A DNA stretch of 64,000 nt, taken from Macrostomum lignano (Eukaryota). The translations under genes were made by a program, and so were the position numbers. Shown piece by piece: positions 10,360 through 16,300 of the stretch; the first letter of the stretch is position 1, and each line of letters begins with the position of its first letter. Below the pieces are notes generated by a model. It saw nothing but the letters and a program-made list of their open reading frames with translations. It was not told where the DNA came from and did no database searches. The stretch covers positions 1 to 64,000 of the forward strand of contig NIVC01002079.1 in NCBI GenBank assembly GCA_002269645.1, read 5' to 3'.

Positions 10360-13300
10360 ATGGGCTGCGAGATGGCCAAGCTGAGGCGGCTGGACATCTC
10401 GCTTGAGAACGGATTGGGAATCTACAACCCTGGCGATCTGGTCAGCGGCTTCGTCTGTGTGGACGTTACTGACAGCACGGAAGTTCACGGTGAGAGTTTT
10501 AACGTGGCTATTTATTTCCCTGATCGTGTTTCAGATGGCAAATCTAGCCAACACATCACGGATGAAGGAATATAATGGATTGCTAATCTAGCCAGCATCA
10601 CTGATGCAGGAATATAATGGATTGCTAATCTAGCCAACACATCACGGATGAAGGAATATAATGGATTGCTAATCTAGCCAGCATCACTGATGAAGAAATA
10701 GAATGGATTGCTAATCTAGCCAATTATCAAGCGCACTGAGTAACCCGGATGAAAAGCTGCTGCAGTCCTTAGCTGATCCAATAATCTGCAGGGAATTACA
10801 AGCTGATGCCATCATCCTTAAGCCACGGATGGGGTAAAAAGTAGAAAAGTACACAGTAGTAGAAGCTTCAAACTTTGGGAGGGGAACCCAGATCGTTAAC
10901 CTATTAGTCAAGGCATTTGGCTTTGACATTTGAAATCCAGCAGCACGTAGTAAACGGCGAATCAGGGCTGCGCTCACTCGCAAATGATCCATCAATCATG
11001 GATGGCCAATCTAGCTGGTTCGAGTTTAAAAGACAACTATTTAGAATAATATTAGATATATAAACGGTTTAACAGAGGCGCAAAATACATTTTAATTTCC
11101 ACTACCAGCAGTTGGTATCGTGTGTGGTCCAGCAGAGTATAGAAAAAGCCTTGGGAAGATGGGAAAAGACGAGAGAGAGAGAGAGAGGGAGAGAGGTCGA
11201 ATGGGGGAGCGAGAGGCAGTAGGGGATTCCCTGATCGGACCAAAGGAAGGGGGGCGAAGCGTGCAGCGAGAAGTGGATCGCGCTCGGACGGGGGAGCCCG
11301 GGCAAGAGAAGAGCCAGAGAGAGAGAGAGAGAGAGAGAGAGACGAGACGAGAGAGAGAGAGAGAGAGAGAGACGAGAGAGCGCGAGAAAGATAGCAAAAT
11401 GGCTTAGTTGCCAGGGTTTTTCGAAACGAATGACGGAGTTTATCCAGCCTGGCGCATTGCCCAGTTCTGAATTGCCCTGAAAGTGGGGGAGGGAGCTGGG
11501 GGAGCTAAAAGAGGGGGCAGGGCAGGGCCGGTGCTGCACTCGAGTGTCTCTGCAGCTTGGCTGCAAAGAATGCCGCATAATTCAAGCTATACGGTGGTGC
11601 TGCACCATGCCTAACCGAATCCAGAGAGAGTGTGTGTGTGCGTGGCCCACCGCATCGCCTGCATGGGAGAGTCTAAAAAAGCGCAACACCCACCCCGCCT
11701 CTGAGCCATCGAAATGGGATGTCACCCTGCTAACGGGGGACGATTTATGCTAGAGAGGTTTTGGGTTTTGTATGGGGCGCGACCCGCCTACCAGGAGTTT
11801 ATGCGCGTTTCGGTTGAAACCGAAGCGCGGTCACTGCATGAGTTCGGCCATGTATTTTTCATAGGCCGGCAGAATGGGATGGGGAGGGAGGGTTGCTTGA
11901 TTTCCCAGCAACTGCAGGCTGCTGCAGTGTAGCAACAAATTTATGGCAGCATACCGAGCCGCTGAGTCAATTAACCACAACAGCATGCATGAGTTCTTAG
12001 AGCAAAAACGCATCAAAGTATCTTATAGTATTTTCTGCCTGCCTCTAATGTTTTACTCTATTTACATGAAAATCATATAGAAAACTGGACGAAAATGCAT
12101 CAGTAGCGACAGCTTAAATACAAAAACAGCGAAAAAACTACAACTGGTTCTTAATTGAAGAATCTTTTTGTAAGGAAGATCAGATATTGTTATGCTGAAA
12201 ATGACGATTTACATTTTTTGCAGCTCATGTATACTCAACAACATCGAAAAGTCGCCATCACAGAACATTCCGTCTGTGGTCGCCACTTTTGAGAGAGCAA
12301 GTAAAGTCTCAATCATCAGGCAGTCTCAGGCAGACTTGAGTTGAGGAATGAAGTGGGGAGCGGTGTGCGAGGGTTGGGCGGATTAAAGCTATTAAAGATA
12401 TTTCAGAATAGTTTATGAGAAAGCGCTCACTGGTGCATAGAGTGGCGAATTTTTAATGTTGCTGAGCATATACTCTCGAAATATACCTGGTACATTTATC
12501 TTGCTTCAAAAATCTGACATACTCGCACCTGTATAATAAACAAAATCGATTGCTTTCAAATCTGCTTTGAGCAAAATAATTTGCATGCGAGGCCATTTGT
12601 CGTTGTGGGAACCGAGACATTTAAACAAAATGATAAACATTCTTTGTCTGAGACACCCGTTTCCACTTTTCAGTCCCCATCTTCTAGAAAACTTTAAGAT
12701 TTAGTTTAAATTTTGCAAACGAAAATAGCCTCGCATGATGAGATAATTTGCAGATACCAGTAAAAGCAAAACGCTAATGTATAATGTACAGCATCTGAAT
12801 GAATACTTAAAGCAGGAGCTGAAGGACGGATTTGTTATATCATAATTTTCCGGTTCAATAAGCAAACGGCCGCGCTACTGTCATGGTGCAGTCTCGGTTG
12901 TCCAAGCTGATCCACCCTAACAGAGCATTTCGTCAAGATGTGCCTGATAACTTCATCGGTCTTCACATGGCGCTTATCGTAGCGCTTGAGCATCTCCTTG
13001 AGCATCTGCCTGGCCTCAGTTGTACTATCTGTAATCAACGCTACCGCGTGAAGCTCTTCAAAGTCGGCACTCCGCCAATCGCCGCGGACATCATCCAGAA
13101 AGGCTTTGGTAGCAGATCCAGCTTGATCAGGGCTATCAGAGAAACTCATTCGCAGAAGATACAGCAAAACAACAAAGTTCAAGTAGACTCTCCTCTCGTG
13201 AAACGGCAACACGCTGGGGAAGCACGCCCGGCAGACCAGGTTGATCGACTGATCTCGATCTGGAGCGAACCGGATGCAGTCCACTGTTCCGTGGCCCATG

Positions 13301-16300
13301 CGACAGCAGATTCGCCACAGAGTGTCGTGGCCAGTCAGCTGACTCCAGATCGCCTCTCTGGTTTTAGTTTTACTCAGTCCTTCCTTGATAGTCAAGTTTC
13401 GCAGAACGCGGCTGCTTTGATTGTCCAACAAAACCTTCCGTGCTGCTTCCTCATCGCCCAGTCTCATTAAGGCTAAGACTCTAAGGCAAATCTTGGCCGT
13501 ATTAGCAAAGCTTGGAATCTTGTCTAGTTCGAGCATAAAATTCTGGGAAAGAGGCCTGTCTAACTTAATTAGCTCCATCAAGATCCGCTTGATTCGAATG
13601 TAAGCATTATGGTAGGCATCAGTCGATTCCTGGTCGCAAATTAACGAGAAGCCGAACGGGAACAACGCAAACGGGTGCACTGATAAATATCCAGGATCTT
13701 CCAGCGGCTTCAGTTGATCTCGGAATTCAGTTATGTATCTGTCAATATTTCCAATCACATGGTTAATGTGCTCCACAATCTTGCATTTTGGGTAATGATC
13801 CTTTTTAAAAAACAAAATGGTATCTTTTAGGAAGAAATGCGGCATGCAGTACTCTTCAATGTTGGACTTTTCTGTCATATAGTTTCGCAGCATGTGTAGA
13901 GCTGTAATCAATAGGGTTCGAAAATTCTCCGTCTTCCAAGCTTCTTTCGGCGTCTTCTTCAACATAAACAGCTGTATGGACTTGGCGTGGTAAGACTTTA
14001 AACCGAAACTTTCGTGTTCTGCAGTGCGAATACCGAGCACTTTCTTGACAATGTACTTGAGAATAATATAGAACTGACCCTGCTCAGTGGTCAGTGAGCG
14101 GAGAACAATCCTCTCCAGAATTGATGTGCTCACTCTCAATTGAGTTCCTTCCTTGTTCGGCGTTCCCGCGCGGATCAGATGGCAAGGATACTTTGGTGAC
14201 TTTACTGCGTTACAGAGCTTCTGAAGCACTTCATCTGGAAAGTGTTCCTTGTCTTCTACCGAAGCAAGCATGCTGATTTCCGGATAGCCACACGCTGCAT
14301 ATGAGTAAACAATATCCATGCTGGGTGTCACATGCGATGCCTGGGTTGTCATCGCTGGCTGCGACACTACAATTATTAACAAGAGGCACGGGAGTCTGTA
14401 GATGCCAATTATATTTCAAAGATTCAAATAGCAACAGCCATGCCAAACTTACCAACAGAGCGTTTAATTCTAATGTGCCCATTCTTGTAGATGTATTTCA
14501 TGCCCTCGTCAATAGCGCACTGGCAAGCACCTTGGATGTGATAGCTCTGTCCCAGCATTATCTCGGTGAAGTCTATGTCCGACTCTCTGCTGACCGAGCC
14601 ATCCACTGAGCTCAGATTGCAGCCCCAGCCGTCGCCGAAGCTGCCCAGGATGAAAATGGTTCTAGAATCCTTCTCCAGGTTATTTCCTTGCTTCTTTTGG
14701 AAGAAAGACCTATAGACGCCCTGCACTACGTCGGCGGCAGCGGTTTGCACTCGCGATCGTTCCCTGGTGAAGCCTGCTTCAGACATCCTTTTGCTCAGCT
14801 CGTTCATATCGACAGGCTGCCTGAAAAACAAAAATATGTAGACATTTCCGCTTAACTTAAAAATACGAGTAAACGCATTCACATGAGCATCAAGCTACAA
14901 TCAATAGTAAGAAGCTTACAAAGAGCTACAGGCGGGTTTTTGTTCAGAACGCAAAGACGCTTCTGGATGAAGCAAATCGGCCAGCTCTTCGTTACCAAGG
15001 CTTTTGCAAATCTCAATGGCATGACGCCTCTGCTGCTCAGACACTCGGTCCCAAAGCAGGCGAGCGGTGGAACGGCGGTCGTAGGCGCAGCTCTGCGCCA
15101 GAGGGCACACTGTTGAACTGTCGGATTCATCGATATCCGGATTGTCACCCGAGCTCAGCAACAGCTTCACTACCGAATCGTGTCCGTTGCATGCAGCCAG
15201 CGATAGAGCTGTTTGTCCATCAGTACAGCGAGCCTCAATATTGGCTTGATAGTCGATGAGGATCTTCACAATATCAACAAAGCCGCCTTCGGCAGCCGCC
15301 ATGAGAGGTGTGTGACCGTCATCTCTGGCCAGCTCCGAGTCTGCACCAAGCCCGATTAGGAGTTCAACAATTTGCCGAAAGTTTGACTGGCACGCCACCC
15401 ACAGGCAGGATTCTCCGTTGCTTCTGGTCGCGTTGTAATTGCAGCGAGAGTCAATCAGCAGTTTCACAATTTCGTAGAATCCGTAAGAAGTGGCCGTCCA
15501 CAGAGCCGTCACGCCCCGAGAATCGGGAATCTCGGGATCGGCTCCCCCGTCGAGCAGAGTCTGAATGACTTCAATGTGCCCGTTGGCCGCTGCAATCCAC
15601 AGTCCCGTCACATTGCCGTTTCGCAACTGAGCGTCGAGGTTAGCCTTCTTCTCGATGAGAACTCTGAGACAGTCTAAACAGACGTTCCTAGACGCGAACC
15701 AAACTGCAGTCTCGCCGTTTTTATTTTCGTAGTTGGGATCTACTCCAGTGTCGATCAAGTCGCGTAGCCGTCTCGACAGGTTTTCTTTCGCACATTTCAG
15801 CAGCTCTTCGCCAGAGTCTGCCGATGCCATTCAGGCAGATCTGAGTGGCATTGCTGCTGCAGAGGAGTGGCTTCTTCAGTTCTTGTGTTTAGTACCTTTT
15901 AATTGGCACCAGGTATGAATTGGTTGAAACAAGTGGTTATAAGCGGCTACGAGCTATATGCTTGTGTTTATGATATAATAGCTGAATATAGAGTAGCTTA
16001 CTATAAATGAATGAGCATCGCAGCTATATAAACAGAACAATGAAACTGTACAGTGTACCGTGCAAAATGTACAGCGCTGCCTTGTACGGGCGCACTGTTA
16101 TGGAGAAAGCCTAAAATAAGGTACTTCATGCCCGCATACGCTCGTACTCATGCACGAGTACACTTAGCCTGACAAATTCAAAAAGGAACATAAGTTCCTC
16201 TCTACCAATCTACTATGGATGACTCACACTCACCGGCCAACCATTCTCTGTCTGTGTCTGGCTGCTGAAATGCGCGCTCACCTACTTACTCACTTACTTA

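Follow-up and report, generated by a model that had tools for sequence, protein, structure and literature searches.

An ankyrin-fused cGAS-like receptor candidate from a lineage-specific gene expansion in the flatworm Macrostomum lignano

We analysed a window of 64,000 nucleotides from the flatworm Macrostomum lignano (positions 1 to 64,000 of the forward strand of contig NIVC01002079.1, assembly GCA_002269645.1), which carries a minus-strand gene, BOX15_Mlig022265g5, whose predicted product joins an ankyrin-repeat (ANK) array to a nucleotidyltransferase (NTase) core of the kind found in cGAS-like receptors (cGLRs). Three minus-strand open reading frames (ORFs) mark the locus: one of 304 aa at 14916-15830, one of 152 aa at 14424-14882 and one of 515 aa at 12835-14382. 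The original prediction, made from the DNA letters alone, held that these splice in frame through two short canonical introns into a single protein of 936 aa. When the exons 15830-14920, 14820-14453 and 14366-12835 are joined, they give a coding sequence of 2811 nt that encodes 936 aa with no internal stops, and the GenBank model is identical to this reconstruction. The gene is built as follows.

14920..15830, minus strand: exon 1, residues 1-303 and two nt of codon 304, with the start codon, the ankyrin array and most of the linker
14821..14919, minus strand: intron 1, 99 nt, GTAAGC...TTTCAG, phase 2, with a same-phase intron in the tandem paralogue
14453..14820, minus strand: exon 2, residues 304-427, with the end of the linker, a spine helix (323-345) and the first strands of the NTase N-lobe
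14367..14452, minus strand: intron 2, 86 nt, GTAAGT...TTGTAG, phase 2
12835..14366, minus strand: exon 3, residues 427-936 and the stop codon, with the remaining NTase core, the Mab-21 C-lobe and the C-terminal tail

The 936-aa product matches the GenBank protein BOX15_Mlig022265g5 with 100% identity over 100% of its length, and the annotated gene spans 12835-15830 of NIVC01002079.1, the same coordinates as the joined model. Window and contig share one numbering, their sequences being identical over 2835-25830 of each. Exon 1, which scores 163.5 bits for Ank_2 and 126 bits for Ank in Pfam, likewise agrees with the GenBank model. An alternative CAG acceptor for intron 2, at 14359, breaks the frame and introduces 28 stops, and was rejected. 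The tandem paralogue has the same splice positions and exon phases (2, 2), as had been predicted. The GenBank gene set of GCA_002269645.1 is a filtered, genome-guided RNA-seq transcriptome assembly produced with StringTie/TACO (PMC5730564), and the BOX15_Mlig022265g5 model therefore rests on assembled transcripts. The gene is thus real, consists of three exons and was read correctly from the sequence; it is not the cryptic fusion that had been supposed, since GenBank already annotates it at the same coordinates.

We considered whether the junction between the ankyrin and NTase parts might be an artefact of annotation, in which two adjacent genes or a polycistronic precursor were merged on paper while the proteins are made separately. 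M. lignano does carry out trans-splicing, and multi-gene precursors make up about 7% of its assembled transcripts (PMC5730564). At this locus, however, both introns are short and canonical and leave all 936 codons in a single open frame, the domains have no stop or start signal between them, AlphaFold models the full-length protein with a predicted template modelling score (pTM) of 0.85, and the same phases are found in a paralogue whose non-ANK parts are synonymously saturated. Beyond the locus, a domain scan of 53 family members found Mab-21_C in 46/53 and Ank_2 in 41/53, and the polypeptides that carry ankyrin repeats include models of an independent earlier assembly. By these counts, ANK + cGLR is the usual architecture in a large, lineage-specific M. 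lignano expansion, and this rule across the family speaks against a mis-joined gene model. We therefore regard an artefactual fusion as highly improbable.

The protein encoded by the three exons can be divided into an ankyrin array, an NTase core with a Mab-21 helical lobe, and a long C-terminal tail, positioned on the contig as follows.

14970..15818, minus strand: ankyrin-repeat domain, residues ~5-287, eight helix-pair repeats and cap helices; acidic, with an isoelectric point (pI) of 4.7
14640..14645, minus strand: codons of G363-S364, the GS motif of Pol-beta/cGAS-type nucleotidyltransferases, read from the sequence
14580-14639, minus strand: long loop between the GS and DxD motifs, residues 365-384, with the Macrostomum clade pattern W-G/A-N-S-L-x-x-x-N/D-G
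14571..14579, minus strand: codons of D385-I386-D387, the first two catalytic acids, read from the sequence
14314..14316, minus strand: codon of D444, the third catalytic acid as placed by hhalign to human cGAS
13795..14064, minus strand: Mab-21_C (PF20266), residues 528-617, containing SYHAK (551-555) and CMPHFF (600-605)
12838..13635, minus strand: C-terminal tail, residues 671-936, ~260 aa, mostly helical, basic (pI 9.0) and conserved in the family

Pfam ankyrin matches cover residues 10-233 (Ank_2, E = 1.7e-48; Ank, E = 1.4e-37), and the full-length AlphaFold model, built from a 53-row family alignment with a mean predicted local distance difference test (pLDDT) of 87.3, places eight helix pairs with a period of ~33 residues between 7-13/18-27 and 243-249/253-260, in agreement with the "about 8" repeats counted from the sequence. 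These are followed by cap helices at 265-287, and pLDDT in the domain is mostly >90. In Foldseek the full-length model retrieves designed ankyrin-repeat proteins (DARPins) and ankyrins, including AnkB/AnkR, at E ~1e-13, and nothing else among the matches listed. By profile and by predicted fold, then, this is a tandem ankyrin-repeat protein. A stretch of about 20 residues at the exon 1/2 boundary (~288-308) is modelled at low confidence, and the linker from the array to the core is predicted to be flexible. The tail of some 250 residues that had been described as helical is confidently modelled as such: its pLDDT is mostly 85-97 and its helices lie between 678 and 915. WRFCF and Y.NF motifs are conserved in the tails of the paralogues, and the tail matches no Pfam family and nothing in a profile search of PDB sequences. 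The domains differ sharply in charge, with a pI of 4.7 for the ankyrin array as against 8.7 for the core and 9.0 for the tail.

The catalytic motifs named in the original prediction were located at GSFGDG (residue 363), SDIDF (384) and SMDIVY (442). In an hhalign alignment with human cGAS, to which the protein is 18% identical over 174 aligned columns, D444 falls on the VDI Asp of ISVDITLAL, the third catalytic aspartate, while QPAMT aligns with SPAVT, LRVSTS..E with WRLSFS..E, and SYHAK with SYHVK. The Mab-21 helical lobe, too, was found where it had been proposed: with 27.1 bits, Mab-21_C (PF20266) clears its gathering cut-off of 24.1, and in alignments the segment is paired with SYHVK and YFIP of cGAS and with PHYFIKD of Sp-cGLR1. 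The AlphaFold full-length model shows the spine helix at 323-345, a strand ending at G363-S364, the DxD strand, the D444 strand and a helical C-lobe, which is the order of secondary structure expected for a Pol-beta NTase.

Although a search of the PDB with the single sequence finds Sp-cGLR1 (8gjy) as best match at E = 0.027 only, a family profile matches PDB sequences of Sp-cGLR1 (8gjy) at 1e-14, of pig, mouse and human cGAS at 4.6e-12 to 2e-9, of MB21D2 at 4e-10, of Cv-cGLR1 at 7.6e-10 and of MAB21L1 at 2.5e-7, and 43/43 of the PDB profile matches fall within the cGAS/cGLR/Mab-21 family. A model of the core alone, compared with cGAS and other PDB structures in Foldseek, has MAB21L1, MB21D2, cGLR (Sp-cGLR1) or cGAS as all of its top 27 matches, at a probability of ~1.0. 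This core-only model was built from a 9-row alignment, has a pLDDT of 61.9 (<50 in the N-lobe) and served solely to rank matches; its TM-scores are only 0.3-0.5 because its N-lobe is poor. Taken together, motifs, profiles and models point to a nucleotidyltransferase core of cGAS/Mab-21 fold whose GS / DxD / D site is complete, the profile and fold evidence extending from about residue 415 onward.

These matches also bear on the suggestion that the site might carry out some other NTase chemistry, such as the synthesis of linear 2'-5'/3'-5' oligonucleotides in the manner of OAS, or the nucleotidylation of an RNA or protein held by the ankyrin array or the tail. The SD[IV]D and GSxxxG[WF] signatures are common to Pol-beta NTases in general, one family member matches an MTPAP-like palm domain marginally (E = 5e-4), the tail, being large and basic, could accommodate a polymer substrate, and STING is reported absent from other flatworms (PMC4117786, PMC13563047). 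Every significant sequence or structure match, on the other hand, lies in the cGAS/cGLR/Mab-21 branch and none among OAS, poly(A) polymerases or terminal uridylyltransferases, and the C-lobe motifs LRVS.S..E, SYH.K and PHFF are those of cGLRs. We consider this chemistry improbable here.

A HMMER search of 1.84 billion representative sequences returned 980 proteins at E <= 1e-3, of which 78 reach E <= 1e-30, and all 12 close relatives whose names were retrieved belong to M. lignano. Among the 53 M. lignano relatives used to count conservation, which are only ~25-30% identical to BOX15_Mlig022265g5, G363 is retained in 51/53, S364 in 52/53, and D385 and D387 in 50/53 each; at D444, 45 of the 49 ungapped sequences have Asp and one has Glu. 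Residues that contact the nucleotide are kept to the same degree (R504, S506 and Y552 in 51/53, K555 in 52/53). Because the catalytic and contact residues persist in 45-52/53 paralogues as divergent as these, the family pattern argues for selection on catalysis. In the core, nonsynonymous sites differ between the tandem copies at a proportion (pN) of 0.25 as against 0.75 for synonymous sites (pS). The window protein does not have the degenerate active site of inert MAB21L1-type proteins, its triad being complete and conserved.

Such a degenerate description does fit a few paralogues (P0029, P0034 and P0097 in our numbering). Three relatives encoded elsewhere in the M. lignano genome, PAA59752.1 (P0029), PAA80948.1 (P0179) and PAA93319.1 (P0034), have a caspase domain at the C-terminus (Peptidase_C14, 90-96 bits) in addition to a cGLR core, the tail and ankyrin repeats; in all three the second catalytic Asp is replaced by Asn and the third acid is missing. 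From their sequences these look like pseudo-enzyme sensors joined directly to a protease, and their caspase domains link the family to cell-death machinery, which counts in favour of an immune role. Our shallow search of the literature found no earlier description of a caspase-cGLR-ANK fusion. A fourth relative, PAA72382.1 (P0097), has lost the DxD, the third Asp and the R-x-S motif and is probably catalytically dead.

Directly upstream of the gene, in gene orientation, lies a second copy in tandem, and three features belong to the history of the pair.

16716..21699, minus strand: tandem paralogue with the same exon structure, disrupted and unannotated in GenBank
14982..15724, minus strand, with its partner at 20896-21638: gene-conversion tract of 743 bp, covering ANK residues 37-283
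17106..19159, minus strand: 5'-truncated non-LTR (non-long-terminal-repeat) retrotransposon (LINE) of 2,054 bp, with the C-terminal half of a reverse transcriptase and an RNase H, in exon 3 of the paralogue

In tblastn the gene and its paralogue are 68%, 52% and 41% identical over three segments. The conversion tract is 98.5% identical, as against 68-74% over the rest of the two genes, and its pS is 0.017 within the tract versus ~0.75 outside it, where the synonymous sites of core and tail are saturated. By these distances the two tandem genes are old, and a recent gene conversion has homogenised the ankyrin module alone. The LINE is recognised by matches to RVT_1 (51.6 bits) and RNase_H (49.9 bits), ends in a short AGTA-type repeat at its 3' side and is flanked by the target-site duplication TTCTCTGCC. 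A second genomic copy of the locus, on NIVC01000673.1 (L002), has an empty site, and the insertion is therefore specific to the NIVC01002079.1 copy. The paralogue is unannotated on both contigs. It also contains an in-frame TGA near 21700, where an A6 run stands against A7 in L002, while the L002 paralogue lacks one G in exon 2, at ~2870. As the assembly is PacBio-based and both indels lie in short runs of a single base, they may be sequencing or assembly errors, and we did not rely on the TGA at ~21700 to call the paralogue a pseudogene, given that the two copies carry differing 1-nt indels of this sort. The LINE insertion is the sole solid disruption of the paralogue.

We suggest, with moderate confidence, that BOX15_Mlig022265g5 is an ankyrin-fused cGLR of the M. 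lignano expansion that works as a ligand-gated nucleotide-messenger enzyme. The protein would be inactive in its resting state, and the binding of a ligand would relieve this inactivity; the activated NTase site would then make a cyclic di- or oligonucleotide second messenger, which in turn would switch on a downstream immune receptor. The ankyrin array would serve as a modular regulatory or recognition module that either binds a ligand or partner, or auto-inhibits the enzyme by masking its basic core. Its position on an exon of its own and its exchange between paralogues by gene conversion, together with the flexible linker that is predicted to follow it, fit a modular recognition or regulatory domain. 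The acidic array could equally be an intramolecular inhibitor of a basic surface.

The original prediction had favoured a protein ligand, recognised through the ankyrin array in place of nucleic acid. This is possible but not favoured by composition, given that the ankyrin array is acidic and that the pI of core and tail lies in the range of nucleic-acid-sensing cGLRs, with which a pI >8.5 is associated by Li et al. 2023 (bioRxiv 10.1101/2023.02.22.529553 / PMC9980059). A broader form of the idea would make the whole ANK-cGLR expansion a set of protein sensors for pathogen effectors or modified self, with ankyrin specificity swapped by conversion and an output through a receptor other than STING or, in the caspase-fused pseudo-enzymes, directly through proteolysis. 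We think this doubtful; if true, it would mean a cGLR branch that works without nucleic-acid ligands, and this in a phylum from which the pathway is believed to have disappeared.

Several observations weigh against the ligand-gated enzyme that we favour. The Pfam model of the Mab-21 NTase lobe, an aid to diagnosis more than a defining trait, gives no match at E <= 1 to this divergent N-lobe, and the loop of 20 residues between S364 and D385 includes an 8-residue stretch that the mollusc-like relatives aligned with it do not have. In cGAS the GS loop acts as activation loop, and the longer GS-DxD loop may be relevant to regulation. Schistosoma and Schmidtea are reported to have lost both cGAS and STING (PMC4117786, PMC13563047), and M. 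lignano does not figure in the part of Table S5 of Li et al. 2023 covered here. Finally, a near-identical core without the ankyrin array has been through a published screen, and it is not among the 15 active enzymes listed there (PMC9980059). According to Table S3 of Li et al. 2023, five M. lignano cGLRs were among the 140 purified enzymes, as samples 89-93, and sample 90 is the core of PAA45980.1 (BOX15_Mlig022265g3) from residue 323, that is, without the ankyrin repeats (PMC9980059). The ligands offered were poly I:C and a 45-bp double-stranded DNA, ISD45 (PMC9980059). The Note column that marks the 15 selected active enzymes is blank for samples 89-93, a blank that is no proof of inactivity (PMC9980059).

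The screen has to be weighed in relation to a non-enzymatic alternative, in which the protein is a Mab-21-type scaffold whose NTase fold acts as a binding module, as proposed for MAB21L1 and MiD49/51, with the ankyrin array and the tail recruiting partners. The absence of the core from the active list of the 140-enzyme screen, as far as the table shows it (PMC9980059), would suit a scaffold, as would the existence within the family of the caspase-fused paralogues, with Asn for the second Asp and the third acid lost, and of PAA72382.1, with the triad lost. Against this, inactivity in vitro is described by Li et al. 2023 as common among cGLRs and probably due to the want of a ligand (PMC9980059), and the gene retains all catalytic and nucleotide-contact residues, as do ~90% of its 53 relatives despite a divergence of 70-75%. 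We regard a pure scaffold as unlikely, although it is the least unlikely of the rivals to a ligand-gated cGLR.

The published assay used a construct without the ankyrin array, and the value that remains lies in the full-length protein and in the side observations. The minor points that are new here are the conversion tract in the ankyrin exon, the LINE insertion in the paralogue and the caspase-fused relatives. Conversion confined to the ankyrin exon and degenerate relatives fused to caspases offer small new hints that specificity, and sometimes output, may reside in non-catalytic modules. M. lignano is a usable system in which to look for the ligand, product and receptor of such an orphan cGLR, as a transgenic laboratory flatworm that is amenable to RNA interference and has dozens of ANK-cGLRs, while other flatworms are reportedly without cGAS/STING.

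Elsewhere in the window, a minus-strand cluster at 5-5703 contains an rve integrase (5703-4807), an AAA-type ATPase (2134-1601), a weak match to a Ulp1-like cysteine protease (2515-2165) and unassigned ORFs of 347 aa and 265 aa; this gene set, whose ORFs were scanned piecewise, suggests a Maverick/Polinton-like element of which the far end lies beyond the first position of the window. On the plus strand, a 345-aa ORF at 33150-34187 has a sub-threshold match to rhodopsin-family G-protein-coupled receptors (7tm_1, 27.8 bits against a cut-off of 30.5). Long tandem or low-complexity tracts occupy 16219-16542, 30183-30992, 35421-38207, 38314-39256, 44437-44908, 49621-50411, 56969-57673 and 59971-60700; on either strand they produce long ORFs that are spurious (with runs of LTYL, SLSL/RERE and SVCL, for instance), and they fit the highly repetitive genome described for M. 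lignano. GC and AT skews are extreme at ~34-40 kb.

Much of what is reported here about the protein was already known: the gene model, the ANK-cGLR architecture and the assignment to the family are all in the public record, and expression of the core has been published. The original prediction left it open whether this architecture had been described. Li et al. 2023, in their survey of animal cGLRs, treat ankyrin-repeat and tetratricopeptide-repeat fusions as classes of cGLR architecture (for the ankyrin class, their Fig. 1C, S2A and 4C), and their tables already contain a sister copy of the gene, PAA45980.1 (PMC9980059). The same source places M. lignano proteins in the cGLR tree and credits nematodes and "most" platyhelminths with Mab21-like proteins only (PMC9980059). 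PAA45980.1 is likewise a M. lignano protein and shares its numbered gene group with the window protein, from which it departs, in the 399 residues printed (323-721), at H584R alone; its Ank_2 positions in the domain table (10-103, 77-164 and 143-233; PMC9980059) match those of the window protein. In effect the two are one gene, present on a duplicated chromosome segment, and PAA45980.1 differs in being a separate genomic copy whose published construct had the ankyrin array removed. The ANK- and death-domain-fused cGLRs of Stylophora pistillata in the same work likewise have a cGLR NTase core fused to ankyrin repeats, albeit in a coral, a member of another phylum, and the authors read the ankyrin repeats of cGLR fusions as a protein- or ligand-interaction module (PMC9980059).

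The nearest relatives outside Macrostomum in the HMMER search, at E ~1e-15 to 1e-18, are proteins of ~700 aa (P0106, P0116 and P0123) that resemble the cGLRs of oyster and scallop which Li et al. 2023 list in Table S3. They share with the window protein the GS..SD[IV]D and WR[IL]S.S..E motifs and a long C-terminal extension past the core. In contrast to it, they have no ankyrin array and a shorter GS-DxD loop, and their tails align poorly enough that homology of the tails is unproven. The conserved ~260-aa tail and a GS-DxD loop longer than that of the mollusc-like relatives are features of the flatworm clade.

Human MB21D2 (7lt1) and MAB21L1 (5eog/5eom) have the same fold, are top Foldseek matches of the core-only model and are orphans without a known ligand. 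Work by de Oliveira Mann and colleagues in 2016 reportedly found MAB21L1 to be without a functional catalytic triad, and in this respect the window protein, with its triad entire, is unlike MAB21L1. The best matches by profile and fold are Sp-cGLR1 (8gjy), Cv-cGLR1 (8gjw) and vertebrate cGAS, which have in common with it the GS/DxD/D triad and the R-x-S-x-S..E, SYH.K and (P)H[YF]F motifs. These enzymes are single-domain proteins, with a disordered N-terminus in addition in the case of cGAS, and their double-stranded RNA or DNA ligands and their products are known, whereas the window protein, as we know it from sequence and models, surrounds the same core with two extra folded domains.

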